From Podarcis vaucheri (Eukaryota): 64,000 bases of DNA. The position numbers and the translations under genes are program-made. Below, piece after piece: positions 9,400-64,000 of this stretch. The stretch lies in assembly GCA_965113315.1 (NCBI GenBank), contig OZ220367.1, one strand, 5' to 3'. Each line of letters begins with the position of its first letter. Position 1 is the first letter of the stretch. The notes under the pieces are model-generated. The model made no database searches. It was not told the origin of the DNA and worked only from the letters and a program-made list of their open reading frames with translations.

Positions 9400-9880
9400 G
9401 CAGTGAGATCACCTAAACTGCCTCCCTGTTGTGGAGCGGGGCCATTTGGATAGCCACAACACCCCATTGGTTGCCCCTCAGTTGCTGGGACAGAAATTTG
9501 GCCTGTTGGGTCATCTATTGGCTACCAAGGGGCTATTTAAGCTGCTGCAAGTTGCTGGGAGCTTTCTCTTTCATGCAATGTACATCAGATCACCTGCCCT
9601 CCCACCCTATATTTAGGGCTGTTCTTTGGCCTTGCTATGCCTGTCTAGGGGTTGTCTGTTTTGGAGCAGGGACCCGGTAGGAATTTTGCCATTTGGCTGA
9701 TTGGCTGTCGCCATTTGGTTTTTGGCTACCGTGTAGCAAATCGTCACAACTTTGTAAGGTTGGCAGTTAGGCATTGGTTCAATGTTGCAGAGGGGAAGTA
9801 GTTGGCTGTGCCTGCCCCTCCATTGCTGTTGCTAGGGAATTCCATTTAAGGAATCCAGGGACTTGCTAATTGCTAATCCA
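9400..9880 (+). mobile_element. LTR-like retroelement repeat, copy A (3'-truncated; possibly DIRS/Ngaro-type)
   Basis: TATA-like ggggctatttaag near 9530. Shares the core ggtaggaattttgcc...ggtttttggctacc..tagcaaatcgtcacaacttt...ttaggcattgg with copies B-D. Family assignment is inference. Confidence 0.6.
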
Positions 9881-11261
9881 GGGATTATGCTAATTGTCCA
9901 CAAATTGCTGCAAAAAAGGTAAAGTACTGAATTTAAGATTGGAAAAATCAGAAACCAAGAGAACCAAAGTTTACAGATCCTTCCATCCCTATCTTTCAGT
10001 GCATTTCTCCCATTTGGCCTTTCAGCAACTGCAAAATGTTTGATGGTAATGAAAACTCTATGCCTAACTCTAATTGGGTAAACCTATGCCTCCTGGGTGT
10101 TCTTTGCAACTTTGAAACTCATGCTTCTTCTGTGACTAATCCTTCATGATGGAGAAGTTGCACAGAAGGCAAAACAATAAACCCATCTCGTGCATGAGGC
10201 CTGCCAAAAACAATTACATCAACAGTGTGTTAGTTCCACAGCAGGTATGACATCCATAGCAGGTATTTACTCTAAGGGAGTGTCTTAATTAATGACTTCT
10301 GAAGCCAAGACTAGTATCATACTCCAAACTAAGGTTGCAAACCAGGATCACAACCATGGTTTGGTATTTTCATTCAAACCCTGGTTTGGATGCAGTAGCA
10401 AGTTATTGTTTGATCAAAGCATTCTATTTATATTAGCAGAACAAGACTTTCTTTTAACCAGGAGAATGAAAGGATGTGGGGAGGGGAGGGAAGAGGGCAC
10501 AGGGAACACATAAGGACAGAGCTTGTTCATGAGCATGAAATTTCCATGCCTATGATTCATTATTAGTTTGTTCTTGGATAAGAAAGATGGCAGGCACTGG
10601 AGCAGATTCACTGAGAATCCCTCCACAAGTTAACTTTTTCCAGACATAGAGATTAATCTCTTTTCTCTCCTTCCCCATCCATGAACTGAAGAAGTGGATT
10701 GTTCTAACTTGACTATGTAGCTTCTTTGCTTAAGCAAATGGTATGGAACCATTTTTTGTTTAGGCGAGAGAGAGAAATCAGATACCCTTCTGCAGGCCTC
10801 TTTTGACAGGTGGACAAGTCCACTACCCTTTCAGTCACTTGGCTTCATGCAACATCAAGTGATTTCAAGCTCACCATAAACCAGCAGGGCTTCCATTCTG
10901 TTCTGAATTTAAACAATGCCAAATGCAAGTCCCATTGCCTTGGAGAAATTGGGCAGGCATTATAAGCCACACACTCCCAATTCTTCCTTGGCAATGGGAG
11001 TTGAATTCAATGCTCTTTAGATTCAGCAGCAAATGTGAAAGCCCCACTGCTGTCTGCAGCGATTGCACCACTCAGTAGCACCAGAGCTGAACCTCTTGCA
11101 GCCAAACTTGTCTTCAGCACCAGATTTATACAGTGCCAAGCCCCACTGCAAAGGAATGATTGGGTGTGCACTTGCATGTTACTGATTTTTCATTGGCAGC
11201 CATGGCTTTACCTGGCCCACACTTGATGTCACATGACATCAGGTGAATGGCAAACAGACAT

Positions 11262-14657: not shown

Positions 14658-15023
14658 GGGGACATGGATGGTGCTGTGGGTTAAACCACAGAGCCTAGGA
14701 CTTGCCGATCAGAAGGTTGGCAGTTCGAATCCCCGCGACGGGGTGAGCTCCCGTTGCTCGGTCCCTGCTCCTGCCAACCTAACATTTCGAAAGCACGTCA
14801 AAGTGCAAGTAGATAAATAGGTACCGCTCTGGCGGGAAGGTAAACGGCTTTTCTGTGCGCTGCTTTGGTTCGACAGAAGCAGCTTAGTCATGCTGGCCAC
14901 ATGACCCGGAAGCTGTCTGAGGGCAAATGCCGGCTACCTTGGCCTATAGAGCAATATGAGCATCGCAACCCCAGAGTCGGCCACGACTGGACCTAATGGT
15001 CAGGGGTCCCTTTACCTTTACCT
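14658..15023 (+). mobile_element. Sauria SINE, full length
   Basis: tRNA-derived head with A/B boxes (tggtgctgtggg, gttcgaatc), (acctt)n tail, 13-bp TSD tatctcatctaca (14645-14657 / 15024-15036). Confidence 0.95.
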
Positions 15024-15109
15024 TATCTCATCTACATTCCACTACTATTCCAAGGAGTCTCAGAAAAAATGTAGGGATTATTGCTGTTGTTGCAATTTAT
15101 TACTCACCC

Positions 15110-19424: not shown

Positions 19425-19781
19425 GGGGACACGAGTGGCGCTGTGGGTTAAACCACAGAGCCTAGGGCTTGCCAATCAGAAGGTTGGCGGTTTGAATCCC
19501 TGTGTTGGGGTGAGCTCCCGTTGCTCGGTCCCTGCTCCTGCCAACCTAGCAGTTCGAAAGCACGTCAAAGTGCAAGTAGATAAATAGGTACCACTCCTGT
19601 GGGAAGGTAAACGGCTTTTCTGTGCACTGCTCTGGTTCACCAGAAGCAGCTTAGTCATGCTGGCCACATGACCCGGAAGCTGTACACCGGCTCCCTCGGC
19701 CAATAAAGCAAGATGAGTGCCGCAACCCCAGAGTCGGCCATGACTGGACCTAATGGTCAGGGGTTCCTTTACCTTTACCTT
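19425..19781 (+). mobile_element. Sauria SINE, full length, no TSD
   Basis: Close match to 14658-15023; (acctt)n tail. Confidence 0.93.
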
Positions 19782-19845
19782 ATTTCAATATGAATAGGAA
19801 AATAAGAGTACCCCTAAACATTCTTTTTAGGGGGGAAAAGGCACT
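19782..19845 (-). mobile_element. hAT MITE terminal fragment (family of 6803-7807)
   Basis: Reverse complement reads cagtgcctttt...atgtttaggggtactc, matching the left end of the 6803 element. Confidence 0.6.
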
Positions 19846-21682: not shown

Positions 21683-21959
21683 TCTCCACCAGAGAAATAC
21701 AAGGCTGATGAATGGAGAGGAATCCCTGCGGCCATTGTCTTCTGTCCAAGGTCCTCAATACAGCAGCTCAAGGAGTGTTCTGTGATAGGCTTCTGTAAAC
21801 ATGTTTACTTGTATGTAAAGCTGAGGCTGCTGTGGACACCAGAGGCCATCTTGGCTGTGCAACCTGGAAGACCTGCTCCCTGCCTTGCAGGCCTTTTCCC
21901 ACCTGGCCTGGGAGTGTGGGGACCTGACTGACTCCAGCTACAAAACCTATTCCTTCAAA

Positions 21960-22775
21960 GGTTATTGCGTGATCAGGTTGCAACAGCCACAGCCCCCAGA
22001 GATCACAAGAAAGGAATAAAGACTGACAACACGTTATGGAATTAAAATTAGGCCACAACTTTATTAAACTTCCAAATGTAGGAAGAGCTTGGCTTAGGCC
22101 TTTGGCGTGTACCCCTCCCAGCCCCCCAGCCGGGGGAACTAGGGAACACCAGGGTAAATGGGATATGGGGGTGCACTGAAAGACGTATGTGTGGCAGGCA
22201 GCCCAGCCCATATCGCCGCAGTCAGGGTAGTTCACTGACAGCCTTTCGGTGTATGGCCAGTGACACCCATTATATAACCCCTTTTAAGAGGGGACCCTGG
22301 AATCAACGCTGCAGGGGGGTGAGTCACCACTTCACACACACACACACACACAGTATAGGGAAGAAAAGACTAAAGGATTCCACCCAAGGCCATAAACCGC
22401 CAAAGTTGTGACGAATTGCTATGGGGAAGACAAAACCTGCCAATGCAGGAAAATTTCTTCCTAGTCATTCAACAGCAACCAGTCAAAGACCACAGCAGGG
22501 CCCACTAAACAGGAAGAAAAAGTTAACCTGCAAAGAAGAAAACATTAAACTAAGGGAGGGTAGGCTGGGAGAATCTCCTAAGCCGACTGCCTGGCTACTG
22601 TTGGCTCCACCCCCATATATAAATGGGGCTGGCCCCACCTCCCAGCATTGAAACTTGACTACTGAGGCAGGGCATGAACCTCCAAATGATAACACTGAGA
22701 GGCAGGGCAGTCTCTTTTTGCCATTAAGTTCCCTGGGAACTTTAGCACCGCACGCGATCCCACAAAGGGCACCCA
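21960..22775 (-). mobile_element. LTR-like retroelement repeat, copy B (best preserved; possibly DIRS/Ngaro-type)
   Basis: On the minus strand: TATA-like tttatatat (about 22623-22615), ENE-like core (22461-22425), AATAAAGTTGTGGCC (22065-22051). I saw no TG..CA ends or TSD. Confidence 0.65.
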
Positions 22776-24070
22776 CAATATAAAGTGTGAGTGCTCATTG
22801 TCTGTGCTCATAGGTGGTGGAGAATGTGCATTGAAGGGGCTAGAGCCATCAGGACAATCTCACCCCCTCACTGTGCATGTGTACAGTTCTCTAACACGTT
22901 GTTCCTCGACACATGATTTCAACATAGCCAATGGGGTGTAGTCTTTAAGGGGCTGGATTAGGACATGGGAGAGCAGGGTTCAAACCTCTGTTCATTCTTG
23001 AAAATCCTGAACTGTAATTTCTCCAAGTGCCAGTCCAGTCTGCCAATTCCTTCTGCTGCAAATTGCTACTGCTGAAGGAGTGGTCAGTTTCCCAAGTTTC
23101 TAGCAGTGTGAAGTTCTGTGCATTTCTACTTCTCTCAAATCATTTCCTGACTTAACAAGGCTATTGAAGTCTGAGATAAATAACAGACTCCAGGAAGCAA
23201 CATCAGCACACTTTTATGTTGTTTTAAAATGTGGAATTATTACATTTGGAAATAAATGTCACACTCAGCATATTATTATAGCACTGGCCAGTGAAACATA
23301 AAGTAAAAATTGGGGAAAACATTATGGGGACCCAGAAATTGTAGCAATAAAAAATAAAATGAATGGAGATGAGAGGGAGGGGGGAACACACAAATAAAAC
23401 AGAGCAATTATTCCTCACTCATAGCCAGTAAAATAGGACAGCGAAGTAAATTATTCCCAGACAATATTCAGATAATAGCTTGAAGATACACAGTGCATCT
23501 CTATTCTTGCAACTGTGAATTAAATCCCCAGGTTTTGGGCTAAATGTCTCATCATCTCTGCCCATTAGCCATGTTGCCAGGGGCTGATGGGAGTTGTAGT
23601 CCAAAGCATGTGAAGAGCATCAGGCTGGGGGAGTACTCTATAAACTTTGTGGCTGTGAAATTGCCTAGTAACAATATATTAGCCACATTATGCACCTCTG
23701 AGCAAGAGTAGAGTAAAACTGCAGCCAACCAACTAATCAGTCAATCAGTCTTGTACCTCTATTCATTCTTTTCTTTGTAATCAGCAGGCATCCGAGGCTG
23801 CTAACATTAGGTTAAAGAGCTGAACTACTGTTTTGTTTTTTAAAAAAAGGAGAGACCCAACTTAATGACTTAATTCTGGGAGGGGGAATTCTACCTAAAG
23901 CCAGCCATACAGACAATTTCCACCATTATTTTACTAAGGGAATTTTCTAAGAAAACTTCAATGTTAAGAGCATGTTAAAATGTATGCAAATCCTGTGATT
24001 AATGCATCTGTGCATGTCACAACAACTATTTATGTATACAGTGTGGAAATTAAATATATGAATAAACTCA

Positions 24071-24663
24071 GTTATCTGTCACTTGGACTACTGCTATACG
24101 CTCTATGTGGGGCTACCTTTGAAGGTGACCCAGAAACTATAACTAACCCAGAATGCGGCAGCTAGACTGGTGACTGGGAGCGGCTGCTGAGACCACATAA
24201 CTCCGGTCTTGAAAGACCTACACTGGCTCCCAGTACATTTCCGAGCACAATTCAAATGTTGGTGCTGATCTTTAAAGCCCTAAACGGCCTCTGTCCAGTA
24301 TACCTGAAGGAGCATCTCCACCCCCATCATTCTACCTGGACACTGAGGTCCAGCACCAAGGGCCTTCTGGCGGTTCTCTCACTTCGAGAAGTCAAATTAC
24401 AGGAAACCAGGCAGAGGGCCTTCTCGGTAGTGGCACCCACCCTGTGGAACACCCTCCCACCAGATGTCAAAGAGAACCACAACTACCAGACTTTCAGAAG
24501 ACATCTGAAGGCAGCCCTGTTTAGGGAAGCTTTTAATGTTTGATGGACTACTGTATTTTAATGTTCTGTTGGAAGTCACCCAGAGTGACTGGGGAAACCC
24601 AGCCAGATGGGCGGGGGTATGAATAAATTGTTGTTATTGTTGTTGTTGTTGTTGTTGTTGTTG
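24071..24663 (+). mobile_element. L2 LINE 3' fragment
   Basis: ORF 24256-24543 has FKALNGLCPVYLKE...RAFSVVAPTLWNTLP...FRRHLKAALF. (ttg)n tail; paralog of 40205-41120. Confidence 0.92.
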
Positions 24664-30706: not shown

Positions 30707-32167
30707 TATACTCAATGCATAGCTGGCAAAGCATGAGATGTGGAGGGTTAGCATATCTCTGACATTCTAAATGTTCTCTACAATTGCCACTCTTTAAGTT
30801 GAAGTCTATGGCTATAGACACATGCACAGAACCTATGAAATGGAGGAGACAAGGACCTAAGACAGCCCCTCATCCACCAGCTCCCTGACATATAACATTT
30901 TTTGCTGGGAAGGCCCACAATCCCTCCTGCCTTAGGGAACTTCCTTGCCCAGATTATGTTTTGATTTGGCTAATTATACTTATTTGGTTTCACCACAGTT
31001 ATGGTTTCTTGAGTCTTCTTTAAGGGTGTGCTAGCAATCCCCTGTTTAGGGGCATTGCATGGAGCAGATCCTGAACATGCTAGATTTTATTTGCAAAGGC
31101 AGATGATATGTTTGCTTTTTTAAAAAAAACAGGAGAGAACATCTTTTAAAAGGTGGAACCTGCATTGTGTGTGGATTAGTCCCAAAAAGACACCATGTTG
31201 CATGTGACCAGCTAATAGGGAAATTTCTGTTCCCATCAGAGACATCAAACTGCCCATACAGTCATGTACACGGAAGATATTTGAACTGACTTTGATTTCT
31301 GCCTTTCACCTTGTATGTACCAGTTCTGATGGATATTCATTCGATTTCCTAAGAAGTGGACAGGTCTACGTGATATTCAGACCCTTTATGGCCCCCAAAT
31401 TCTGTGACGACAACAACAAGCAAATTAAATTCAACGGAAAGAATTTTACACGAATTGGTTCATGGACCGAGCACAGCTAGATGAATGGAGAAAAGGATCA
31501 CTATAAACTGTAATCAGTCTCTGTCAGTGAGCTGGCCCAGAATAATGTTGCTTTCACTAATCTCATTTCCTGTCTTTTTCTCCTTGCTTTTAAGAAACTT
31601 ATCTTCACTAGGATAATATAGACGAGGTTCCCAAAGGAATTTCTTTCCCATTCCTTTTAAACCACATAGCTTATAACTTAGTTTTTCTAAGGGGGGGGGA
31701 ATGTAACTGAAAGGGAAAGGATTGGAAGAGAAAGATATGATATGAAGATGATAAGAGGGGGAGATAATTCGCACCAGAGGCAATTGCATTCAAGGATGTT
31801 CCATAGCTCAGCGGTGCAGTTCATGCTTTGCCTGAATAAGGAGATATACACAGTTCCTGCCATGCCCACTTCAAAAGATCTCAGGTCACAGGGCTGGGAA
31901 AAGCTGCTAATCAGGATAAAGATTATCAGGCTAGAAGGAGCAATGATCTCATTCAGTACAAGGCAGCAATAGCCAATGTGGCAGCAAACTGATGTTGTGG
32001 ACTACAACTCCCGTCATCCCTGACCATTGGCTATGTTGGCTATGTTACCTATGAAGAGTACCACACTGGATACTCCTGCTATAAGGGAACTTTATATGTG
32101 CAAAACTCCCTCTTGGCTACTTTACTGCATTTTCTGCACATATCATTTTATAATGTGTGTCTCTCTA

Positions 32168-32409
32168 CAGTGGTACCTTGGGTTAAGTACTTAATTCGTT
32201 CTGGAGGTCTGTTCTTAACCTGAAACTGCTCTTAACCTGAAGCACCACTTTAGCTAATGGGGCCTCCTGCTGCTGCCACGCTGCCGGAGCACAATTTCTG
32301 TTCTCATCCTGAAGCAAAGTACTTAACCGGAAGCACTATTTCTGGGTTAGCGGAGTCTGTAACCTGAAGCGTATGTATCCTGAAGCTTGTGTAATCCAAG
32401 ATACCACTG
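32168..32409 (+). mobile_element. Tc1/mariner (Tigger/pogo-like) MITE
   Basis: TIR cagtggtacc..., TA target duplication; same family as the 33537 and 47141 copies. Confidence 0.9.
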
Positions 32410-33110
32410 TATATATAAACCATTGCTTTTGGCTTGTGCATTAGTCATGGGAAAAGTAGTGGTGGGGAGATAGAGGGGCCTAGAACTGTTAGGTATATTC
32501 CTGGACTCTTCCCTGAATTTTCAGGTTTTAAAAAAGAGGGGAAGTTTCTAACCCGTTGGTGTTTGGAGATATAAGTATGCAAGCTGTATTCTCTATCCAA
32601 TTGCCCGTTGAGACTCTAATCCTAAACGCACTTACTAGGTTAGGGAGGCAGTTAGTCCAGTTCCACACAGTGGGGCTTACTTTCAAGTAAAAAAGGCTGT
32701 AATCCCAAATCCAATTATTGAGTATAAAGGGACTTACCTTGGAGTAATCCTGCATAGCATCACACTGCATAGGAAGCAAAACAGTTCCTGCCACCTAGTC
32801 TTCTACCCAGTAACTGGAATGACGGATAAACATTAAGTGTGTGTCTCTTCTCTGTGCGTATTTCCCTTTTTTTGAACACTATAAAATTAACATTTATTTT
32901 ATGAATATTAAATACATTTCAAGTATAAGTAAATAATGCTATTAGGCTACCAACTGCTTTATAATACGATCTGACTGCTCTGTAATAATTTTCTGCCCAC
33001 CCACATGCACACATTCCCAGTGTGCCTTGGATGCCCTCACCAAAAGAATTCTAACTATGATGCTATGAGTTAATAGATTTAATAAGCCTGGGAAGTTCCA
33101 GGGACATCCT

Positions 33111-33262: not shown

Positions 33263-33536
33263 TCTGGGGTGCTGGTGCACTGTATGTGTATTTGTTGGCA
33301 TCATGTGAGAGAAAAGCAGCAAGGCAATTCTTATGTCAGGTCAGCCTAAGTTGAGATTCATCAAACTAGATGCAGCCACATGAATCTACACCACATAATA
33401 GGGACTTGGAGGAAAAAACAAAACCTGCAAGCTGGCTTCAGCAATGAGGACGGTGGTCTCAAATCTTCTTTTCAGATCCATATAAACCTAGGGCATGACT
33501 TCAAAGCACTGTTTTCCAATACAGGGTTAACAAGTA

Positions 33537-33778
33537 CAGTGGTACCTCGGGTTACATACGCTTCAGGTTACATACGCTTCAGGTTACAGACTCCGCTAAC
33601 CCAGAAATAGTACCTCAGGTTAAGAACTTTGCTTCAGGATGAGAACAGAAATCGTGCTCTGGCGGCCCAGTGGCAGCGGGAGGCCCCTTTAGCTAAAGTG
33701 GTGCTTCAGGTTAAGAACAGTTTCAGGTTAAGAACGGATCTCCAGAACGAATTAAGTTCTTAAGCCGAGGTACCACTG
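33537..33778 (-). mobile_element. Tc1/mariner MITE, inverted relative to the 32168 copy
   Basis: TIR cagtggtacctcgg / ccgaggtaccactg, TA TSD; interior is the reverse complement of 32168-32409. Confidence 0.92.
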
Positions 33779-34729
33779 TATCCTGTAAAAGGGACTGTCT
33801 CTGGCTTATAACGTATCACCAATGAACCTCCTCTGGAAAAAGAACAAGAGAAGATTTGGCAAGGAACTGGCAACCTGTGTGGGCTTTGTTTGGCTTGTCC
33901 CAGGTTTGTCTTACATTGTAAAAGTAATATATTGCATTTTATCAATGGCAGGAGGCCAGATTCAAGTTCCTTTTCAATTGTGGCACTCATGTATAGTTCC
34001 CATTCATTCCACTCAGTTTGCATATGAAAACCTCCCAGTGGATTATGGCCATGGTGGGCTTTTGTGCAATGCAGGAATGTCCCGCACTTTGCAAAATCAG
34101 CAGAGGCTAGCAAAAGTGCAGAGCAGCGATGAAAGCAAAGGCCTCCTTCGTTCTCGTTGAGGCTCTGACACTGAAACCATACAAAATTCATTTGGCCTTG
34201 GTTTTCATTACACATTCAGACCAAGTTTGTAAAAAGGATTGCTGTGGTTCATGAATCTTTCAAGCAAACTTGTTCTGATCTATGCTTTTGCATAGCAGTC
34301 ATGCAAAATTCATCACCTTCTAAGGGTTCTTGACACAAAAGTAGGTGGCATTAGGTGTTTTTTGCACGGATTTGGCTTTCAGAATTTTCTGTAAGGGTCA
34401 TAACCGAAATTCAAAGCAGAACCCACAAGGAGCAATGCCAATGCTGAAAAATACATTAAATAATATTCCCCATTTTAGAACTCGTGTCTTTGAGGATTCA
34501 AATTGTATGAATGGCTAATGATTCTTCAATCTCTCTAATGCATATATTCCTTCCTCGCTTCTGCTTAGTATCTGCCCAGTAATATTGAATGGGGTAGGTT
34601 GGGGTTGAATCTATCTATCTAAAGCACGAGTGATGGAACTTTTCCAGCCAGCCTAAAAGCTAAAGGTGTTGATCAGATGTGAGGATGCATGGATTCAGTC
34701 AGGACCACAGACAATCCATTTAAATCAAC

Positions 34730-35460
34730 TGTAATTCAGTCTGTCATCGGATGTCCCAACCGCCCTCCCTGCATGTTTGGCCCTACCTGAAGATGAACAG
34801 GCAGAGCATGTTCGTGACTTGCTATTCTTTTCAGTAGCCTTTCTGCTAAATGCTTGGCTAGTGTAAAGGTTGTGTTAGTTACTCTGTGGAACAGAGATGG
34901 GCAAGTAATCTGGCTGTCAACATCCTGTTTCCTGTTTCCTGCTATTGAACCAATTAATCACTGTATTCAACGCCAGGGAGGAATTTGCCTGCAAACCAAT
35001 TAGGCTGGGCTGGGGGTTTTGCCTACCTCATAGCAACCATCACAACTTGTGTGGGGGGGAGGCATTGGGTTGGATCCTTAGCCTAAACAAGGGGGGGAAT
35101 GAGTCTTTAACCCTCTCTCAGGATCAAGTATCAAGGATATCCCAGTAAAGAAGTCCAGGAGGAAAGTTTTTGCCCAAATGGGGCTAAAGGGCCACAGAAT
35201 TCCTAATGGCGTCCCAGGAGGATCGCTCCATTTGATGGGCATTAGGGTGCAAACCTTAACCCAAGATCAACCCTAATGTGTTAATCAACCAGCACTCAGT
35301 CTCATTGATTCAGAATACATACCCAATGCCTAAGCCAAAACTTACTTACATCTGTAATCCATAAAGTTGTGGCCATTTCAATCCCAAGACATTGTCAAGA
35401 CATTTCTTCTGTTTGCTGAGCCCTGGCCCAGGAGGTTCTGAGCTCACTGTGCACAGGCCC
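34730..35460 (+). mobile_element. LTR-like retroelement repeat, copy C
   Basis: Core gggaggaattt...ggttttgcctacctcatagcaaccatcacaactt (34976-35048) and ataaagttgtggcc (35361-35374). Confidence 0.6.
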
Positions 35461-40204: not shown

Positions 40205-41070
40205 TCTGAGTGCCTGGAGGCGGTTGGAGGTTGGATGGTGGCTAACAGATTGAGGTTGAATCCTGACAAGACAGAAGTACTGTTTTTGGGGGACAGGAGG
40301 CGGGCAGGTGTGGAGGATTCCCTGGTCCTGAATGGGGTAACTGCCCCTGAAGGACCAGGTGCGCAGACTGGGAGTCATTTTGGACTCACAGCTGTCCATG
40401 GAGGCACAGGTCAAATCTGTATCCAGGGCAGCTGTTTACCAACTCCACCTGGTACGCAGGCTGAGAACCTATCTGCCTGTGGACTGCCTCGCCAGAGTGG
40501 TGCATGCTCTGGTTATCTCCCGCTTGGGTTACTGCAATGCGCTCTATGTGGGGCTACTTTTGAAGGTGACCCGGAAACTACAACTAATCCAGAACACGGC
40601 AGCTAGACTGGTGACTGGGAGCGGCCGCAGAGACCACATAACACCGGTCTTGAAAGACCTACATTGGCTCCCAGTACGTTTCTGAGCACAATTCAAAGTG
40701 TTGGTGCTGACCTTTAAAGCCCTAAACGGCCTTGGTCCAGTATATCTGAAGGAGTGTCTCCACCCCCATCGTTCTACCCGGACACTGAGGTCCAGCACCG
40801 AGGGCCTTCTGGCAGTTCCCTCACTGCGAGAAGCCAAGTTACAGGGAACCAGGCCCAGGGCCTTCTCGGTAGTGGCGCCTTCCCTGTGGAACACCCTCCC
40901 ACCAGATGTCAAAGAGAACAACAACTACCAGGCTTTTAGAAGACATCTGAAGGCAGCCCTGTTTCGGGAAGCTTTTAATGTTTGATGTATTATAGTATTT
41001 TAATATTCTTTTGGAAGCCGCCCAGAGTGGCTGGGGAAGCCCAGCCAGATGGGCGGGGTATAAATAATAA

Positions 41071-41341: not shown

Positions 41342-41444
41342 TGTGAACCTAAGCTGCCATGGTGACTGAATCAGCTGGGTGCATGTATAACCAGAAGCAT
41401 TCATCCAGCCAGCATTTTGTTCTGCTTAATTAGAGGAAATATTA

Positions 41445-41809
41445 AAGGTAAAGGTAAAGGTACCCCTGCCCGAACGGGCCAGTCTTGCCAGACTCTGGGG
41501 TTTGTGCGCCCATCTCACATCTATAGGCCGGGGGCCAGCGCTGTCCGGAGACACTTCCGGGTCATGTGGCCAGCGTGACAAAGCTGCATCTGGCGAGCCA
41601 GCGCAGCACACGGAACGCCGTTTACCTTCCCGCTGGTAAGCGGTACCTATTTATCTACTTGCACCCGGGGGTGCTTTCGAACTGCTAGGTTGGCAGGCGC
41701 TGGGACCGAGCAGCGGGAGCGCACCCCGCCGCGGGGATTCGAACCGCCAACCTTTCGATCAGCAAGCCCTAGGCGCTGAGGCTTTTACCCACAGCGCCAC
41801 CCGCGTCCC
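41445..41809 (-). mobile_element. Sauria SINE, full length, very young
   Basis: CpG-rich with intact A/B boxes; 13-bp TSD agaggaaatatta (41432-41444 / 41810-41822). Confidence 0.96.
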
Positions 41810-45180: not shown

Positions 45181-45965
45181 CATTGTGTGGCAAGGCATCC
45201 CCCCCGCCCTTTGGACTGCCCCAATTTCCAAGAACCAAGAGGGATGACAACTAGTGTTTTGGGTTAAAACTGGGCCACAACTTATTACAAACAGATGTGA
45301 GATGTTTGGCATAGGCATTGGTTGGAAAAACCCCTCCCACCTCCAGCCCACCTGTCAAAGGACTTACATTGGGGTCAACTGGAAGTGAGGAATTCCCTGC
45401 TGGGTAACTCCTCTACTGGATTGCACCTGGGGAGTGCTGTGGTCCCTCACCCCCACCTGGGCATCTGGACAAAAGCATCTCCCCTGAATCCCTTTAATGG
45501 TATCATCCATTCTCAGATGGGCAGGCAGAGGCTACAACTTCCCCTCTGTCCAAGACTGCTCAACCAGTGCCTAAACCACCAAAGTTGTGATGATTGCTCT
45601 TAGGATGGCAGAAACCAGAAGGCTGGAGCCAATTTACCAAATGGGGAAACTCCAACTTGGCCCTGAATACGGTGACCAACTATGCCTTGGTCCAGCAGAG
45701 CAACATGAAACAGCAATGTAGGGGGGAGGGGCGGAGATCCAACTAAGAAATGGCTGCAGCGCAAGCCACAAACCTTATTTATATACTCCCCCAGGAGAGG
45801 TCTGCCCACATGCTCGTTCGTGATTTGCCAATTGAGACAGCGGGCAGGATCTGCTTCCCTGGTAGCAAGCCTAGCCCAGGAACCTCCTTTGCTGCTCAGA
45901 AGGTATCCCAAGGGCAGGGGAATGCCAAGCCACAATGGCACACACCAAGATGGGTGAGTGGTCCT
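45180..45965 (-). mobile_element. LTR-like retroelement repeat, copy D
   Basis: On the minus strand: tatataaata (about 45785), degraded ENE-like core 45657-45603, tcacaacttt 45590-45581, aataagttgtggcc 45286-45273. Confidence 0.6.
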
Positions 45966-47140
45966 CACATACTGAACTTTGGCAATAGAGAGAATCATAT
46001 ACCAGAAAGCAGTCAAGCTGGACTAGGAGAGTTTTGAAGATGTTGTCTTGAAGGGAATTGATTTACTATAAAGGAAATCTTTGGCAACTTGATAAAAATG
46101 TCATGAAGTTCAATCTAGTTCATAATGTCACATGCTTATTAATTCAAAACAAAACAACATTGTGAGGAAGAGCCTTCCTCCAACATCACATCAGTGTGAT
46201 TTGGATTTCTTCCCGGATGGAAATGGAGTCACAATCAGTCTATGTTTTAGAGCTCATCAGTAGCTATAATCAGGCATCAATATGTATTGGCAAATCTTGC
46301 TAGGGTATAAAATTGTGGTGGAGATGAACATCGCACAGACTTGCTAATCATTTAAAAATGCAGTTAGTCTATGTCTCCGGGAATTCTTTCTGCCTTTTGA
46401 TACTATAACTTCAACATGAACATAAGGGAATCTGATGTACTCTTAGGGGGAGGGTTAAAATTTAAATGCAATTCAGCACCTTAATCTGTGCCTTGGTGGG
46501 CTTAAGTTGACAAGACTAAAAGGGGGAAACTCTGCTTTTTTCATTTCCAGTCCATTCATGTGTGTGTGTGTGTGTGTTTTCCCTCTTTCAAAAGCAATAG
46601 GATGGAAAGGAGAGAGGGAGATCTACACATGATCCTCAGCATGTCTAAAGGCCTCTCCAGATTGGAAGGGAATCCGGGAGAAGGACAACCATTTTGTCCA
46701 GGAGACAACCATTTTGGCCCTACTAAAGTAAGATTGGGGCTCATCCACATTTATGTTTATTCTGTGATTTCTAGGCACAGGTCCAAGGGGTTGTTGTTTT
46801 TCTCCCACCACTTTCCCCAGGAAACCTCACTGTTTACTACTGAATTGGAACAGAGGTCAATCAGGTTTCCTGTAGTGTCTGAAAGAACTCTGATCTGTTT
46901 CAGAGCACTGTGCCATTCCGATTTGATCCATTATTTGGGTCCAAATCTGACCTGCTAAATCCTAAACTGCTTTGTCCCCATTGACTATCATGGGAAATCT
47001 AAAAACATTTGTAACTTTCTGCCAAGACCTTCAGCATTTTCAAGTGTCTATGGGAAAACAAAATTGGGAACCACTATTCTAAACAATCTAAGAAAAGTTA
47101 GAAGTGTCTTCATCAGAAAGAGTTTGTGTTACTGTCTGTA

Positions 47141-47367
47141 CAGTGGTACCTCGGGTTAAGAACTTAATTCGTTCTGGAAATCTGTTCTTAACCTGAAACT
47201 GTTCTTAACCTGAGGTACTACTTTAGCTAATGGGTCTTTCCTGCTGCCGCCACACCACCACCACACGATTTCTGTTCTCATCCTGAAGCAAAGTTCTTAA
47301 CCCGAGGTACTATTTCTGGGTTAGTGGAATCTGTAACCTGAAGCAACTGTAACCCAAGGTACCACTG
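47141..47367 (+). mobile_element. Tc1/mariner MITE, third copy
   Basis: TIR cagtggtacct / aggtaccactg, TA TSD. Confidence 0.9.
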
Positions 47368-58355: not shown

Positions 58356-61300
58356 TTATAATTCATATAATTTATAAAACTTTTGCAAATAGTCCTTAAA
58401 TTTTTTCCATTCCTCCTCCATTACTTCTTCTCCCAAGTCTCGGATCCTGGCAGTCATCTCAGCCAATTCCATGTAGTCCATAAGCTGCGTTTGCCATTCT
58501 TCCAGTGTGGGCAAATCTTGAGTCTTCCAGTATTTTGCTATAAGAATCCTTGCTGCTGTAGTTGCATACATAAAAAACGTTCTATCCTTCTTTGACACCT
58601 TTTGGCCGACAATGCCCAAGAGGAAGGCCTCTGGTTTCTTAGGGAAGGTGTACTTAAACACCTTTTTTAACTCGTTATATATCATTTCCCAGTAGGCCTT
58701 CACCCTAGGGCATGTCCACCACAGGTGAAAGAATGTCCCTTCGGCCTCTTTACATTTCCAACATTTATTATCAGACAAATGGTATATCTTAGCAAGTTTG
58801 ACTGGGGTCATGTACCACCTGTATATCATTTTCATGATGTTTTCTTTCAGGGCATTACATGCCGTAAATTTCATACCGGTGGTCCATAACCTTTCCCAGT
58901 CTTCAAACATAATGTTGTGCCCAGTATCTTGAGCCCACTTTATCATGGCCGATTTAACTGTCTCATCCTGAGTATTCCATTTAAGCAGCAAGTTATACAT
59001 TCTAGACAATAACTTAGTCCTAGGTTCTAACAATTCTGTCTCTAGTTTCGATTTTTCCACCTGAAAACCTGTATTTTTTTTATCCGTCTTAAATACCTCT
59101 TGAATTTGGGCATAATGAAACCAATCTTGCACCTTGTCTTTTAATTTTTCAAAACTCTGTAATCTCCAGTTGTCTCCAATTTTTTCTATTATTTCGCTAT
59201 ATGTCGGCCAGCCGGCCTCCATATTGGATCTTTTCCGCGCCTTGGCCTCCACTGGTGAAAGCCACCTCGGGGTCTTACTTTCTAACAAGTCCTTATATTT
59301 TGTCCAGACTATAAAAATTGCTTTTCTGACAATATGGTTTTTGAACATTTTATGTGTTTTTACCTTGTCGTACCACAAATAGGCATGCCATCCTAAAGAA
59401 TTGTTAAACCCTTCCAGATCTAGGACATCAGTGTTCTTAAGTAAAAGCCAATCTTTCATCCAGCAGAAGGCTGCAGCTTCATAATATAACCTTAAGTCTG
59501 GCAGGGCAAACCCCCCTCTTTCTTTTGCATCAGTTAAAATTTTAAACTTTATTCGGGGCTTTTTGCCCTGCCAAACAAACTTCGAGATATCCTTCTGCCA
59601 TTTCCCAAAACATTCCACTCTGTCCACGATCTGTAAGGCTTGAAACAAAAATAACATCTTTGGCAACACATTCATTTTTATCAGTGCTATTCGGCCCAAC
59701 AAGGAAAGTTTCAATCTTGTCCAAATTTCTAGATCTTTTTTCACCTCTGTCCAACATTTTTCGTAATTATCTTTAAACAAATTCAAGTTTTTTGAAGACA
59801 AGTTAATCCCCAGGTATTTCACCTTTTTCACCACATTTAATTCTGTTTCCCTCTGAAACCCATCTATTTCCAAAGATGTCAAGTTTTTACCCAGCACCTT
59901 GGTTTTTTGTTTGTTCAACTTAAATCCTGCCACCCGACCAAACTCCTGAATCAATTCTAGAACTCTTTTTGTACTAGATTCTGGCTCCTGTAATGTCAAA
60001 ACCAAATCATCTGCAAAAGCTTTCAGTTTATATTGTTTCTCTCCGACCTGTATACCTTGTACCTGCCGGTCCTTCCTAATCATATTCAAGAGCACCTCCA
60101 GGACCGAAATAAATAATAAGGGGGAGAGAGGGCACCCTTGACGTGTTCCTTTTTCAATTTGAAACTCTTCTGTCACCACATTGTTCACTATTAACTTAGC
60201 TTTCTGTTCTGAATATATTGCCTCTAAACCATTTTCAAATCCCCGTCCCACTCCCATCCCTTCCAAATTTTTCTTCATAAACCTCCAGGAAATGTTATCA
60301 AAGGCCTTCTCCGCATCAATAAAAATTAACACTGCTTTGGTGTTAATGTTAGTTTGCAAAAGTTCCAAGACATCTATAATGTTCCTGGTATTATCATACA
60401 AATGTCTGCCTGGGAGAAAGCCTGCCTGGTCCTTATGAATTACTTCATTCAGAACCTTTTTAAATCTATTTGCCAAAATGTCTGCAAATATTTTGTAATC
60501 CACATTGAGGAGTGAGATGGGACGATAATTCTTTAGTTGAGTCTTTTCAGATTCCACTTTAGGAATCAATGTAATGAAAGCTTCTTTCCACGTTTCTGGT
60601 GCTCTCCCTCCATCCATAATCTGGTTACAAACCTCCATTAAGGGTTGTATCAAATAGTCTTTTAGTATCTTATAATACTTGGAGGTAAGTCCGTCAGGGC
60701 CTGGAGATTTGCCCAACTGCATATTCTGAATGGCAACCTCAATTTCCTGTTGTGTTATTCTATAATTCAAGATTGATCTCTTTTCCTGAGAAAGTTCTGG
60801 TAGGCCATTGGTTTTCAAAAATTGATCCATCTCGAACACTTCCTCGGGTCCTTGCGTGTACAGTTTTTTAAAATATTTCTGGAAGCACTTTCTAATTTCA
60901 CCTGGTTTCTGGATATTTTTCCCTTCAACCTCTAGATTGGTAACATAGTTCAATTTTTGTCTTTTCTTCAACTGCCATGCTAGCAGTTTCCCACATTTGT
61001 TCGCTGATTCAAAAGATCTTTGTTTCATTTGTTTAATTTTCCATTCCACTTCTTGGTTTATCAATTTCATATATTGTGCTTGATGGAATTTAATTTCTCT
61101 CAAAATCTCTTTTGATTTCGGGTTAGATCTCAATTTTTTCTCACCATCTCTTATCTTCTCTAATATCTTATCCTTTTTTCCATTCCAGAGCTTTTTCTTA
61201 ATTGTGTTCTGTTGTATCAGAAACCCTCTCATTACAGCTTTACTTGCATCCCAGATTGTTCTCTTTTCCACCGAGGTGTTCAAATTTATTTCAAAATAGT

Positions 61301-62099
61301 CTTTTAAAGCTTTTTGGGCCTTCTTTACAATCTCTTGATCTCTTAACAGGTTGTCATTCATTTTCCATCTGAAGGAACCGGATGGAGTAAATCTTAATTC
61401 CACTTTCAGAGCGTTATGGTCGGAGCAGGTTTTTGGGCAGATTTCCACTTTTACAGTCTTAGGTGCCAGCCCTCTAGTTACCCAAATCTGGTCGATTCTT
61501 GTCCAAGATAAATGGGCCTCAGAGAAGAACGTTCCCTCTTTACCTAGGGGGTTCCTTGTCCTCCAAATGTCAATCAAATCCATATTGTCAGTCAGTTCAA
61601 AAAAGGTTTTAGGTAGTCTGCCGTCTTTAGTCAAGTTTTGATTCTGCGACTTGTCCATTAATGTAGAGACCACTCCATTCATATCTCCCATCATAATGAT
61701 GTTAGTATAGTCCAGATAGTCCAGCAATGTCTCATGCAGTTTCTTATAAAATTCCGATTTCCCCTCATTTGGTGCATAAATTCCTAATATCAAAACTTTT
61801 TCACCCTGAGTTTGTATTTCAATTGCCAAAATTCGTCCATATTCATCTTTAAACAAAAATTTTGGTGACAAATTCTCCTTTGCATAGATCACTACGCCTC
61901 TTTTCTTGACTCTGTCCGATGAAATAAATTCTTGGCCCAATCTTTTATTTATTAATACTTTCCTTTGGAGTCTTGTCACATGTGTTTCCTGAAGACAAAT
62001 TATATCCAAATGTTCTTTTTTCAAAATATGAAAAATCTTTCTTCTTTTCTCCAGGGAATTTGCACCATTAATATTCCAGCTGTACAACTGCAGAGACAT
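58356..62099 (-). CDS. L1 ORF2 (APE endonuclease + reverse transcriptase + CCHC), 1247 aa, uninterrupted
   Basis: Endonuclease motifs SWNING, LQETH, GDMN, RIDQIW, SDH; RT motifs YRPISLLN, DAEKAFD, QGCPLSP, FADD, YLG; C-terminal CWKC..HLWWTC. Confidence 0.97.
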   Translation of the reverse strand: MSLQLYSWNINGANSLEKRRKIFHILKKEHLDIICLQETHVTRLQRKVLINKRLGQEFISSDRVKKRGVVIYAKENLSPKFLFKDEYGRILAIEIQTQGEKVLILGIYAPNEGKSEFYKKLHETLLDYLDYTNIIMMGDMNGVVSTLMDKSQNQNLTKDGRLPKTFFELTDNMDLIDIWRTRNPLGKEGTFFSEAHLSWTRIDQIWVTRGLAPKTVKVEICPKTCSDHNALKVELRFTPSGSFRWKMNDNLLRDQEIVKKAQKALKDYFEINLNTSVEKRTIWDASKAVMRGFLIQQNTIKKKLWNGKKDKILEKIRDGEKKLRSNPKSKEILREIKFHQAQYMKLINQEVEWKIKQMKQRSFESANKCGKLLAWQLKKRQKLNYVTNLEVEGKNIQKPGEIRKCFQKYFKKLYTQGPEEVFEMDQFLKTNGLPELSQEKRSILNYRITQQEIEVAIQNMQLGKSPGPDGLTSKYYKILKDYLIQPLMEVCNQIMDGGRAPETWKEAFITLIPKVESEKTQLKNYRPISLLNVDYKIFADILANRFKKVLNEVIHKDQAGFLPGRHLYDNTRNIIDVLELLQTNINTKAVLIFIDAEKAFDNISWRFMKKNLEGMGVGRGFENGLEAIYSEQKAKLIVNNVVTEEFQIEKGTRQGCPLSPLLFISVLEVLLNMIRKDRQVQGIQVGEKQYKLKAFADDLVLTLQEPESSTKRVLELIQEFGRVAGFKLNKQKTKVLGKNLTSLEIDGFQRETELNVVKKVKYLGINLSSKNLNLFKDNYEKCWTEVKKDLEIWTRLKLSLLGRIALIKMNVLPKMLFLFQALQIVDRVECFGKWQKDISKFVWQGKKPRIKFKILTDAKERGGFALPDLRLYYEAAAFCWMKDWLLLKNTDVLDLEGFNNSLGWHAYLWYDKVKTHKMFKNHIVRKAIFIVWTKYKDLLESKTPRWLSPVEAKARKRSNMEAGWPTYSEIIEKIGDNWRLQSFEKLKDKVQDWFHYAQIQEVFKTDKKNTGFQVEKSKLETELLEPRTKLLSRMYNLLLKWNTQDETVKSAMIKWAQDTGHNIMFEDWERLWTTGMKFTACNALKENIMKMIYRWYMTPVKLAKIYHLSDNKCWKCKEAEGTFFHLWWTCPRVKAYWEMIYNELKKVFKYTFPKKPEAFLLGIVGQKVSKKDRTFFMYATTAARILIAKYWKTQDLPTLEEWQTQLMDYMELAEMTARIRDLGEEVMEEEWKKFKDYLQKFYKLYEL

Positions 62100-62123
62100 C
62101 CTGGATCGATCTGTTGTTACTCT

Positions 62124-62828
62124 TTATGGAGTGTCCTCCTTTTCTTTCGAGCCCGAGGGCAAAGATGATGGATCTACTCCAAGCGGTAGTGGTGGCCAAG
62201 GGATGGTTATCCCCTTCTGTAGGTCCTCTCCGTGGTCGTGCAGGAACTTCTGGGAGTCTTCTTGCGTTTTGATTTTAATTTTCTTTCCCTTATATGTAAA
62301 TGATAACCCTTGAGGAAATTCCCACCTATAAGGTATCCCGTTGCCTCTCAGTAATCTTGCTAGGTCCGTGTAAACAGCCCTGAGGTCCAAAAGTTGTTTT
62401 GGTATATCCTTGTAAATTTCGGCTTTCCTGTCTTGGAACTCAAGTGGTTTCTTAAAATGAAGGTCTAATATCTTGTCTCTCTCCTGTTTTGATCTCAAAA
62501 TAATCAAGCAGTCCCTGGGTCTGTCCTTCCTTGTTGCTCTTCCCAATCTAAATGCAGTTGATATTTTAAAGTCCTGGTCAACTTTTATATCCCAGAATTT
62601 GGAAAACTCCTCTGTCAAATAACCAGTCAAATCTTCTTTCTCTGATTCTGGGATAAAGCGGATTCTCAAATTATTTTCCCGGTTTCTCAATTCGATCAAA
62701 GACAGGTAAGCCTGCTGGTCACTGATATGTTTATGTAGTGGCCTTACTTCTCCCTTTATTTCCTGAATTTCTTTATTTGCTTGTTCAGCCTTCGAATTTG
62801 CAGCCTCAGCTAATTTCCGATTTTGTGA
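62124..62828 (-). CDS. L1 ORF1, C-terminal part (coiled-coil end + RRM/CTD), no start codon
   Basis: Frame is open from the 5' junction: SQNRKLAEAANSKAEQANKEIQEIK...ELRNRENNLRIRFIPE...FRLG...IYKDIP...YRWEFP. Its stop lies 24 nt before the ORF2 ATG. Confidence 0.85.
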   Translation of the reverse strand, partial: SQNRKLAEAANSKAEQANKEIQEIKGEVRPLHKHISDQQAYLSLIELRNRENNLRIRFIPESEKEDLTGYLTEEFSKFWDIKVDQDFKISTAFRLGRATRKDRPRDCLIILRSKQERDKILDLHFKKPLEFQDRKAEIYKDIPKQLLDLRAVYTDLARLLRGNGIPYRWEFPQGLSFTYKGKKIKIKTQEDSQKFLHDHGEDLQKGITIPWPPLPLGVDPSSLPSGSKEKEDTP

Positions 62829-62830
62829 TA

Positions 62831-64000
62831 CAGGATCTCAGATAAGTTTTGGCGCCAAGTGGTGTTCTTTTGAAAAGATACAAAGGCTTGTTTGGCCAAT
62901 AAGGTGTTTGAAGTGTTTGCAAGATTGATGTAAAATCGTAGGAATCTTAAGTGGGCCCTGGCAGATACAGAGGGTAATCCAACCTCCACCCTCAAGAAAG
63001 CTGCTGGGGTTCCTTGAGGAAGGCCTAGAATCCTCTTGAGATAATAATTTTGCAAAAATTTCAAGCTGTTCCAACAGCCTCTGGTTCCACCCCCAGAGTT
63101 CTATCCCATATAACATCTGGGGGATAGCTTTCCCAACAAAAGCTCTTAATGCCGGGATCACCAGTTGTCCCCCCCTGGAATGGAAGAAACTAAGCAAAGC
63201 ACCAATTGTTCTTCGTGTTAAAATGGTTACAGCCTTAAAGTGGGCTAGCCAACTAGATGTAGCCTGGAATGTAACACCCATATATTTAAAAAAAGGACAC
63301 TGTTCAATCACATGTCCATCTAAAGACCATCTAGAGATGTGGCGAGCTCTAGTGAACACCACAATTTTTGTTTTGTCATAGTTTATCTTTAGTGAATTAT
63401 GGGAACAGTAGGCTGCAATCCCCTCCAGCATGCTGCGTAAGCCTCTTCGGGTGAGTGCCATTAAAGCCATGCCATCGGCATATAGCAATATATTCAGGCA
63501 TTTACCTTCAAGGGCTGGAGCCGATGACTTGTACTTTGCCATGTACTGAACAATGTCGTTTATATAAAAGTTAAAAAGAAATGGGGCTAGCAGGCATCCC
63601 TGTTTGACCCCTTTCCCCAATGGCAGTGGGTCTGTAAGAGTTCCCGATGGCCCAGTTCTGATTTTGACTGTAATGTCTGTGTGTAGCTCTCTGAGAATTT
63701 TTAAAAGTCGTCTATCAATGTCCGTTTCATATAATTTTTTCCATAGTCTATCTCTACAGATTGAATCGAAGGCAGATGTCAAGTCAACAAAGGCCACAAA
63801 GAGTCTGCTCTTATACGCTTTTGCATATTTAGCTACCAAGGTCTGTAGTACCATGCATGCAGTGACCTATCGTATTGTGGCCCTTTCTAAATCCTGCCTG
63901 TTCCTGGTTGAACAGGTTAGAATGGTCCGCCCAATCTAAAGCTGATAGTAATAGTTCGTCATAGTCATTGGCAGCCTTCTCTTCTTTTTGTCTGTCGCAA
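62831..64000 (-). pseudogene. RTE-X LINE RT region (continues beyond the window)
   Basis: EQAGFRKG, FVDLTSAFD, GVKQGCLLAP, YADG (catalytic YADD mutated), FKYMG. Frameshift near 63060. The reading frame resumes across the L1 TSD into 57943. Confidence 0.88.

Follow-up and report, generated by a model that had tools for sequence, protein, structure and literature searches.

A discrete, LTR-like repeat unit of approximately 807 nt occupies positions 21991–22797 on the minus strand of the window, i.e., the whole stretch of 64,000 nt of Podarcis vaucheri DNA that was analyzed, and carries at 22425–22461 a hairpin with a U-rich internal loop. Four homologous copies of this repeat were identified in the window by local alignments, MAFFT, and nhmmer; they are pairwise 62–76% alike and are hereafter called c1 (the unit above), c2 (9420–10197, plus strand), c3 (34771–35459, plus strand), and c4 (45190–45963, minus strand), the last two being delimited by local alignments and nhmmer. 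The homology of c2 to the other copies fades after approximately 9880–9910. No copies beyond these four were found by nhmmer over the 64,000 nt. Public contigs at least 80% alike were placed on 21900–22900 for two DNA runs from two organisms, which gave 2405 contigs for one run and 3199 for the other; the repeat family is very abundant. The depth of the placed contigs is zero beyond 22817 and dips at 21968–22001, and 40 and 51 contigs diverge at 22799 into AT-rich, unlike flanks. Because of these depth edges and the shared break-off, the unit is regarded as discrete and approximately 807 nt long, with a sharp 5′ edge and an approximate 3′ edge. When further copies were sought in a metagenome scan with a conserved 21-mer and in a viral-contig scan, unrelated bacterial or phage chance matches only were returned, and a search by protein words from the 97-aa ORF that the element contains, directed at gene calls on other copies, found nothing.

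The four copies alternate in orientation (+, −, +, −) at a spacing of 10.6–12.7 kb, which is dense at four per 64 kb; the alternation may be due to chance, which would produce it in about 1 of 8 cases for alternation alone. A (TG)n microsatellite is present at 22333–22356 inside c1, in a stretch that is missing from the other three copies. At 21901–21945, a short piece of a different abundant repeat abuts c1, and many placed contigs extend from both edges of this piece into common sequence (agreement of approximately 0.65). Other mobile elements also populate the window. An intact 1247-aa ORF at 58356–62099 (minus strand) encodes apurinic-type endonuclease and reverse transcriptase domains, as in a LINE ORF2 with an L1-like layout, and a separate 338-aa ORF just upstream of it at 62838–63854 (minus strand) is a reverse-transcriptase fragment, so that 58356–63854 possibly holds a young LINE beside an older fragment. 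Three copies of a SINE-like repeat, 84–91% alike, lie at 32162–32421, 33525–33803, and 47114–47354; two of them form an inverted pair 1.1 kb apart, and this repeat is younger than the LTR-like family. Two more families of interspersed repeats have copies that are 85–92% alike, one at 24071–24553 and 40512–40995 and the other at 14658–15030, 19425–19787, and 41443–41784 (inverted).

The LTR-like character of the unit is indicated by signals that share one orientation and lie on the same strand of c1, namely a TATA-like run (22613–22623, minus strand), an AAUAAA poly(A) signal (22060–22065, minus strand), a CA at 22038–22037 located 23 nt after AAUAAA, and, following this CA, a GU-rich stretch (22015–22032, minus strand) that is likely the downstream element of the poly(A) site. 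The TATA-like run is approximately 155 nt upstream of the c1 hairpin, and such runs precede the hairpin by 125–155 nt in c1, c2, and c4 and are absent in c3. The AAUAAA lies 360 nt downstream of the c1 hairpin and has near-matches at the same column in c3 and c4. The similarity among copies persists to approximately 21991, i.e., approximately 45 nt beyond the CA of the likely cleavage site. The unit begins with TG at 22797–22796, as c4 also does, and a 3′ CA is found in c3 and c4 and is not clean in c1. No flanking target-site duplication was found for c1 or c4, no same-strand partner LTR lies near any of the four copies, all of which are solo, and the ORFs near them contain no retroviral domains, with no gag/pol interior found. 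These features would fit a solo LTR with a short U3, a long R of approximately 550 nt, and a short U5. Three other origins were considered and rejected. Segmental duplication or a gene cluster, which the alternating orientation and the 11–13-kb spacing might recall, was ruled out by flanks that share no homology among the four copies. A DNA transposon with terminal inverted repeats was ruled out by unit ends that are not complementary, c1 and c2 moreover being the least similar pair, and a processed retrocopy by homology that continues approximately 45 nt past the likely cleavage site and by the lack of an A tail. The family is an old, dead, abundant LTR-like repeat of lizards, which may derive from an animal provirus, and c1 itself is a decayed solo unit that is not expected to work now.

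The c1 hairpin, as read from the sequence of the minus strand and from folding, consists of a 6-bp lower helix, an internal loop of AA and U4 on the 5′ side and U4 and G on the 3′ side, a 5-bp upper helix, and an AUUG apical loop. All six pairs of the lower helix (22461–22456 with 22430–22425) and all five pairs of the upper helix (22449–22445 with 22440–22436, closing the AUUG loop) are perfect. The 5′ U4 tract at 22450–22453 is preceded by AA, and the 3′ U4 tract at 22432–22435 is followed by G. This layout is the minimum-energy fold (−16.3 kcal/mol) and accounts for 84% of the ensemble, with a z-score of −3.3, and none of 200 shuffles was as stable. The preliminary description had read the same hairpin on the minus strand, with these helices and a U4/U4 loop, within a retroelement terminal repeat that has a TATA-like box upstream and an AAUAAA approximately 360 nt downstream. 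That reading was exact with respect to the sequence and the minimum-energy fold, the two signals were located at 22623–22613 and 22065–22060, and the placement in a repeat rather than in a one-off feature is borne out by the four homologous copies, the LTR-like signals, and the sharp shared ends.

A scan for this layout, which required U4 or longer on each side of the loop, five or more Watson–Crick pairs in the upper helix, and six or more in the lower helix, with small offsets allowed, found a single match on both strands of the 64,000 nt, namely, the c1 hairpin, and dinucleotide-preserving shuffles (n = 200) gave a mean of 0.01 sites per window. The layout is thus rare per window, yet by extrapolation some hundreds of such sites would arise by chance in a genome of 1–2 Gb. 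Because a few hundred chance sites would be expected per vertebrate genome, a single hairpin proves little alone, and it is conservation within the repeat family that raises the c1 hairpin above chance.

Hairpins at the equivalent position were examined in the other three copies by folding and alignment. The hairpin of c2 (9675–9731, plus strand) has the same layout with a U4/U5 loop and a longer upper helix that contains a small second U/U loop; that of c3 (34976–35027, plus strand) is degraded, with U3 on one side and U3–4 on the other; and that of c4 (45603–45657, minus strand) is also degraded, with U3 and an interrupted tract. In folding, c2 adopted the layout of c1 (z-score of −3.5), and c3 did likewise in degraded form. 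The proposal that an equivalent layout recurs in three diverged copies consequently holds for the coordinates, the homology, the c2 fold, and the degraded c3 fold, and fails for the minimum-energy fold of c4, which differs. When the cores of the four hairpins, all of them from decayed copies (n = 4), were aligned with MAFFT, RNAalifold returned, unaided, a lower helix, an internal loop, and an upper helix. On this structure, 80.7% of the cells assigned to pairs are paired in the four copies and both-sided changes are found at 8 of the 15 pairs; 2–7 of 500 shuffles reached the observed pairing values, a comparison in which related sequences may beat shuffles without any structure. Slid controls, in which the 3′ partners were shifted by 1–3 columns, gave 0–3 pairs with both-sided changes.

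The paired changes are distributed over both helices. In the lower helix, an A-U pair of c1 corresponds to U-A in c2, and an A-U pair of c1 corresponds to G-C in c3 and c4; at one pair, c4 has U-A where the other three copies have A-U; and at the base of the upper helix, U-A and G-C of c1 are replaced by C-G and A-U in c2 and c4. Furthermore, 18 nt of the upper hairpin present in the other three copies are missing from c1, which still forms a perfect 5-bp helix with an AUUGG apex. The loop behaves differently from the stems around it, with 8 of its 11 columns invariant in the four copies vs 7 of 30 in the stems and 15 of 54 in the remaining columns (Fisher p of 0.004–0.006 for these comparisons, and 0.006 for that with the stems). 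The letters of the internal loop are the most conserved columns of the hairpin, and stems that vary in pairs around an unvarying loop are the usual mark of a recognition element. Two outcomes had been named beforehand as grounds for abandoning the proposed element, U tracts that are not conserved and helices that do not covary; what was found is three invariant columns of four in each tract and the paired changes described above, both at n = 4. Among the c1-like contig copies, the high-share differences in or beside the hairpin, among those listed, are a C at 22430 and a G at 22462. The former, present in most c1-like copies, would leave A-C as the top pair of the lower helix, and the latter would add a bottom G-C pair with 22424. 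No high-share difference in the U tracts is among the differences listed.

These data bear on the possibility that the hairpin has no function and is a structure that arose by chance or hitch-hiked in a well-conserved part of the repeat. The small number of aligned copies (n = 4), the capacity of related sequences to outperform shuffles, and the number of chance layouts extrapolated to genome scale all favor this explanation; it is nonetheless improbable in view of both-sided changes at eight pairs, far from the 0–3 of the slid controls, of a loop that is more conserved than its stems, and of a c2 fold that is independent of the c1 fold.

The apex presents a further observation: ATTGG, an inverted CCAAT box, is kept there in c1 (22436–22449), c2, and c4 despite the 18-nt difference in length. 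Conservation at the DNA level is conceivable on this basis, the block being an enhancer or promoter with a Rel/NF-κB-type 5′ half and an inverted CCAAT apex and the hairpin being a palindromic by-product. The presence of CCAAT in c3, where the other three copies have ATTGG at the apex, and the invariance of the loop letters would suit such a block, whereas paired changes that preserve helices are not expected for protein-binding DNA and a position approximately 125–155 nt downstream of the TATA-like runs also argues against it, so that this interpretation appears improbable, to the same degree as absence of function.

Downstream of the hairpin, a 12-nt linker (22413–22424, minus strand), which lies within the best-conserved block of the family as judged from the alignment and a depth peak, leads to a predicted long-range stem. 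The outer part of this stem, H1, pairs 22402–22412 with 22052–22062, and its 3′ strand overlaps the last three letters of AAUAAA; the core of H2, nested in H1 and recognized by alignment, pairs 22386–22391 with 22097–22102 (all on the minus strand; both strands of H1 are based on folding and alignment). Both helices persist in c1, c3, and c4 and include one compensatory pair, 22388–22100, with C-G in c1 replaced by A-U in the other two; the 3′ strands of both are missing from c2. H1 and H2 occur in the minimum-energy folds of c1 (z-score of −3.7) and c3 and are absent from that of c4. The depth of the family peaks at 22376–22477, which comprises the hairpin with its linker and the 5′ strands, and at 22036–22103, which comprises the 3′ strands and AAUAAA. 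Because these two peaks coincide with the pieces of the fold, the latter are the most conserved parts of thousands of copies. An alternative assignment of the conserved block after the hairpin as a primer-binding site or tRNA was discarded, as ARAGORN found no tRNA and the block is the 5′ strand of the long-range stem. A GCATTGG-type word recurs in the H2 5′ strand of c2, c3, and, with one change, c4, and both this word and the apex ATTGG are complementary to the H2 3′ strand in c3 and c4; the recurring word may represent an old internal duplication or an alternative pairing.

The geometry of this stem would have consequences for the RNA. In the predicted fold, a tail added after the CA at 22038–22037 would start approximately 15 nt from the stem, and the hairpin would be located 12 nt from its other side; folding of the RNA would in this way bring the U loop and the poly(A) tail side by side. 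The closeness of the hairpin to the tail rests on the predicted fold because the hairpin is 360 nt from AAUAAA in sequence. From promoter and poly(A) signals only, transcription is expected on the minus strand; its start and the poly(A) site are likewise predicted from sequence signals. Counts of G-U vs A-C, used as a test of the strand, were tied at 3 vs 3 for the hairpin and likewise for the long-range stem. Family contigs, for example one that spans 22035–22455, are present in two runs presumed to be RNA, and some contigs from RNA-labelled runs continue past the predicted cleavage site, it being understood that contigs can show neither strand nor transcript ends.

The position of the stem at the signal raises the possibility of a module that controls the poly(A) site, in which the stem would partly hide AAUAAA and bring the U-rich hairpin next to the signal; the U tracts would then serve as an upstream U-rich element for cleavage/polyadenylation factors or as a tuner of the use of the 5′ vs the 3′ site in R. 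Such a module would agree with the pairing of the last three letters of AAUAAA by H1, with the stem strands and the hairpin being the best-conserved parts of the family, and with the canonical CA and the GU-rich stretch after the signal. It also has precedents in structured poly(A) signals of retroviral R regions, since the HIV-1 poly(A) hairpin partly hides AAUAAA and the HTLV-1 RexRE is a structured R-region poly(A) signal. In the HIV-1 poly(A) hairpin and in the R-region stem of HTLV-1 and BLV, as in the predicted fold of the lizard element, a conserved stem that includes part of AAUAAA closes a large R domain. The HTLV-1 fold, in contrast, bridges the signal and the cleavage site, whereas the spacing between the signal and the likely cleavage site is normal in the lizard element. 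An upstream U-rich element, however, needs no symmetric U/U loop between two covarying helices, and a control module of this kind is considered an unlikely explanation of the hairpin.

Another cis-acting signal of R, acting in packaging, dimerization, nuclear export, transactivator binding, or first-strand transfer, could also be envisaged, with the invariant loop letters forming a contact surface for protein or RNA. Covarying stems with invariant loops are a general signature of any recognition hairpin, the AUUGG apex is kept in three of the four copies across the difference in length, and a hairpin in R would sit approximately 100–130 nt from the 5′ end of the RNA. The lack of a detected gag/pol interior and of any partner tied to the hairpin, together with an LTR location that packaging signals specific to unspliced RNA seldom have, makes this reading, too, a candidate of low probability.

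A short ENE-type poly(A) clamp is ranked above these explanations as the most likely single mechanism, and it is put forward as a plausible guess. A possible sequence of events can be formulated as follows. The unit would be a solo LTR transcribed on the minus strand, with the hairpin in R or at least in the last approximately 430 nt of the full-length RNA. The long-range stem would close a domain of approximately 300 nt, whereupon the tail, which would start approximately 15 nt past the stem, could come to lie beside the U-rich loop. The two U tracts may then sandwich a few adenosines of the tail as U-A-U triples, and the resulting clamp could slow deadenylation of the retroelement RNA. The clamp is rated likeliest because it requires a U/U loop that is symmetric, invariant, and flanked by covarying helices, as is present here, because this arrangement exceeds the needs of a plain U-rich upstream element, and because the predicted fold delivers the tail to the loop. 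It is tentatively proposed, in other words, that a squamate LTR family possessed a compact clamp of 4–5 U's per side that was positioned by a stem containing the poly(A) signal.

If this is true, the element would be the first ENE from a transposon of an amniote and would introduce a new “positioned” architecture for the ENE class. A real clamp would add a reptile retroelement to the plant, fungal, and fish elements with triple helices on the poly(A) tail; a short U loop made effective by a tail-delivering fold would help to define the minimum requirements of the motif and could guide searches for elements that current models miss. If the hairpin is not an ENE, it is still part of a clean, covarying R-region fold around the poly(A) signal of an uncharacterized, very abundant lizard repeat.

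ENEs are stem-loops whose U-rich internal loop lies beside G-C pairs that permit A-minor contacts (PMC7583470, PMC12501189). The PAN ENE forms five U-A-U triples and three A-minor triples (PMC7583470) and carries an AU bulge at the triplex base (PMC13541005), and in the Evade ENE the G-C pairs that directly adjoin the U tracts are essential (PMC12501189). ENEs are located near 3′ ends, sometimes inside the LTRs of plant and fungal elements (PMC13541005); more than 200 elements, for the most part from plants and fungi, are known to carry them, and because they have been predicted in stickleback retroviruses, they are not new to vertebrates as predictions (PMC7583470). Double ENEs have an adenosine triad and longer U tracts (PMC13541005). 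A literature search found no paper on squamate ENEs. A search of Rfam 15, which may lack an ENE model, yielded no family near threshold, with weak lncRNA, miRNA, and snoRNA matches far below it.

Against this background, a U-rich internal loop between two helices is present in c1 and c2, in degraded form in c3, and in the RNAalifold consensus, and the helices covary around conserved loop U's, with modest support at n = 4. On the upper side of the loop, a C-G pair adjoins both U tracts. On the lower side, AA and G intervene before the helix in all four copies; the helix there has A-U as its top pair in c1, where c3 and c4 have G-C. The tracts are shorter than approximately five U-A-U triples would call for, with U4/U4 in c1, U4/U5 in c2, U3/U3–4 in c3, and U3 opposite an interrupted tract in c4. 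The preliminary suggestion that this family stabilizes its RNA with an ENE is partly supported, by the layout, the covariation, the conserved U's, the LTR-like unit, and the long-range stem that would place the poly(A) site beside the hairpin, and is weakened by the tract length, by the AA and G on the lower side, and by the lack of an Rfam match; the lizard hairpin is not filed as an ENE.

Compared with KSHV PAN and related viral ENEs, the lizard hairpin has the same succession of stem, U-rich internal loop, and stem and a G-C closing pair on the upper side. Its unpaired letters at the base of the loop can be likened to the AU bulge of PAN (PMC13541005), and it would likewise lie upstream of a poly(A) tail. 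In contrast to PAN, it has four U's per side, whereas PAN has enough for five triples, and its AA and G precede the lower helix, so that the G-C platform for A-minor contacts is not adjacent there. It is also 360 nt from the signal, with closeness to the tail depending on the predicted long-range stem. With respect to the ENEs and double ENEs of transposable elements, such as Evade/Copia93, TWIFB1, and plant and fungal LTR elements, the second U/U loop of c2, four base pairs above the first, recalls a double ENE; unlike in double ENEs, this second loop is only 2 × 2 and absent from c1-type copies, and the lizard hairpin is without the adenosine triad and the longer U tracts (PMC13541005). Whereas the host of the lizard element is a squamate, the hairpin resembles these transposable-element ENEs in being borne by a retroelement, and it may sit inside the LTR, as some of them do (PMC13541005).
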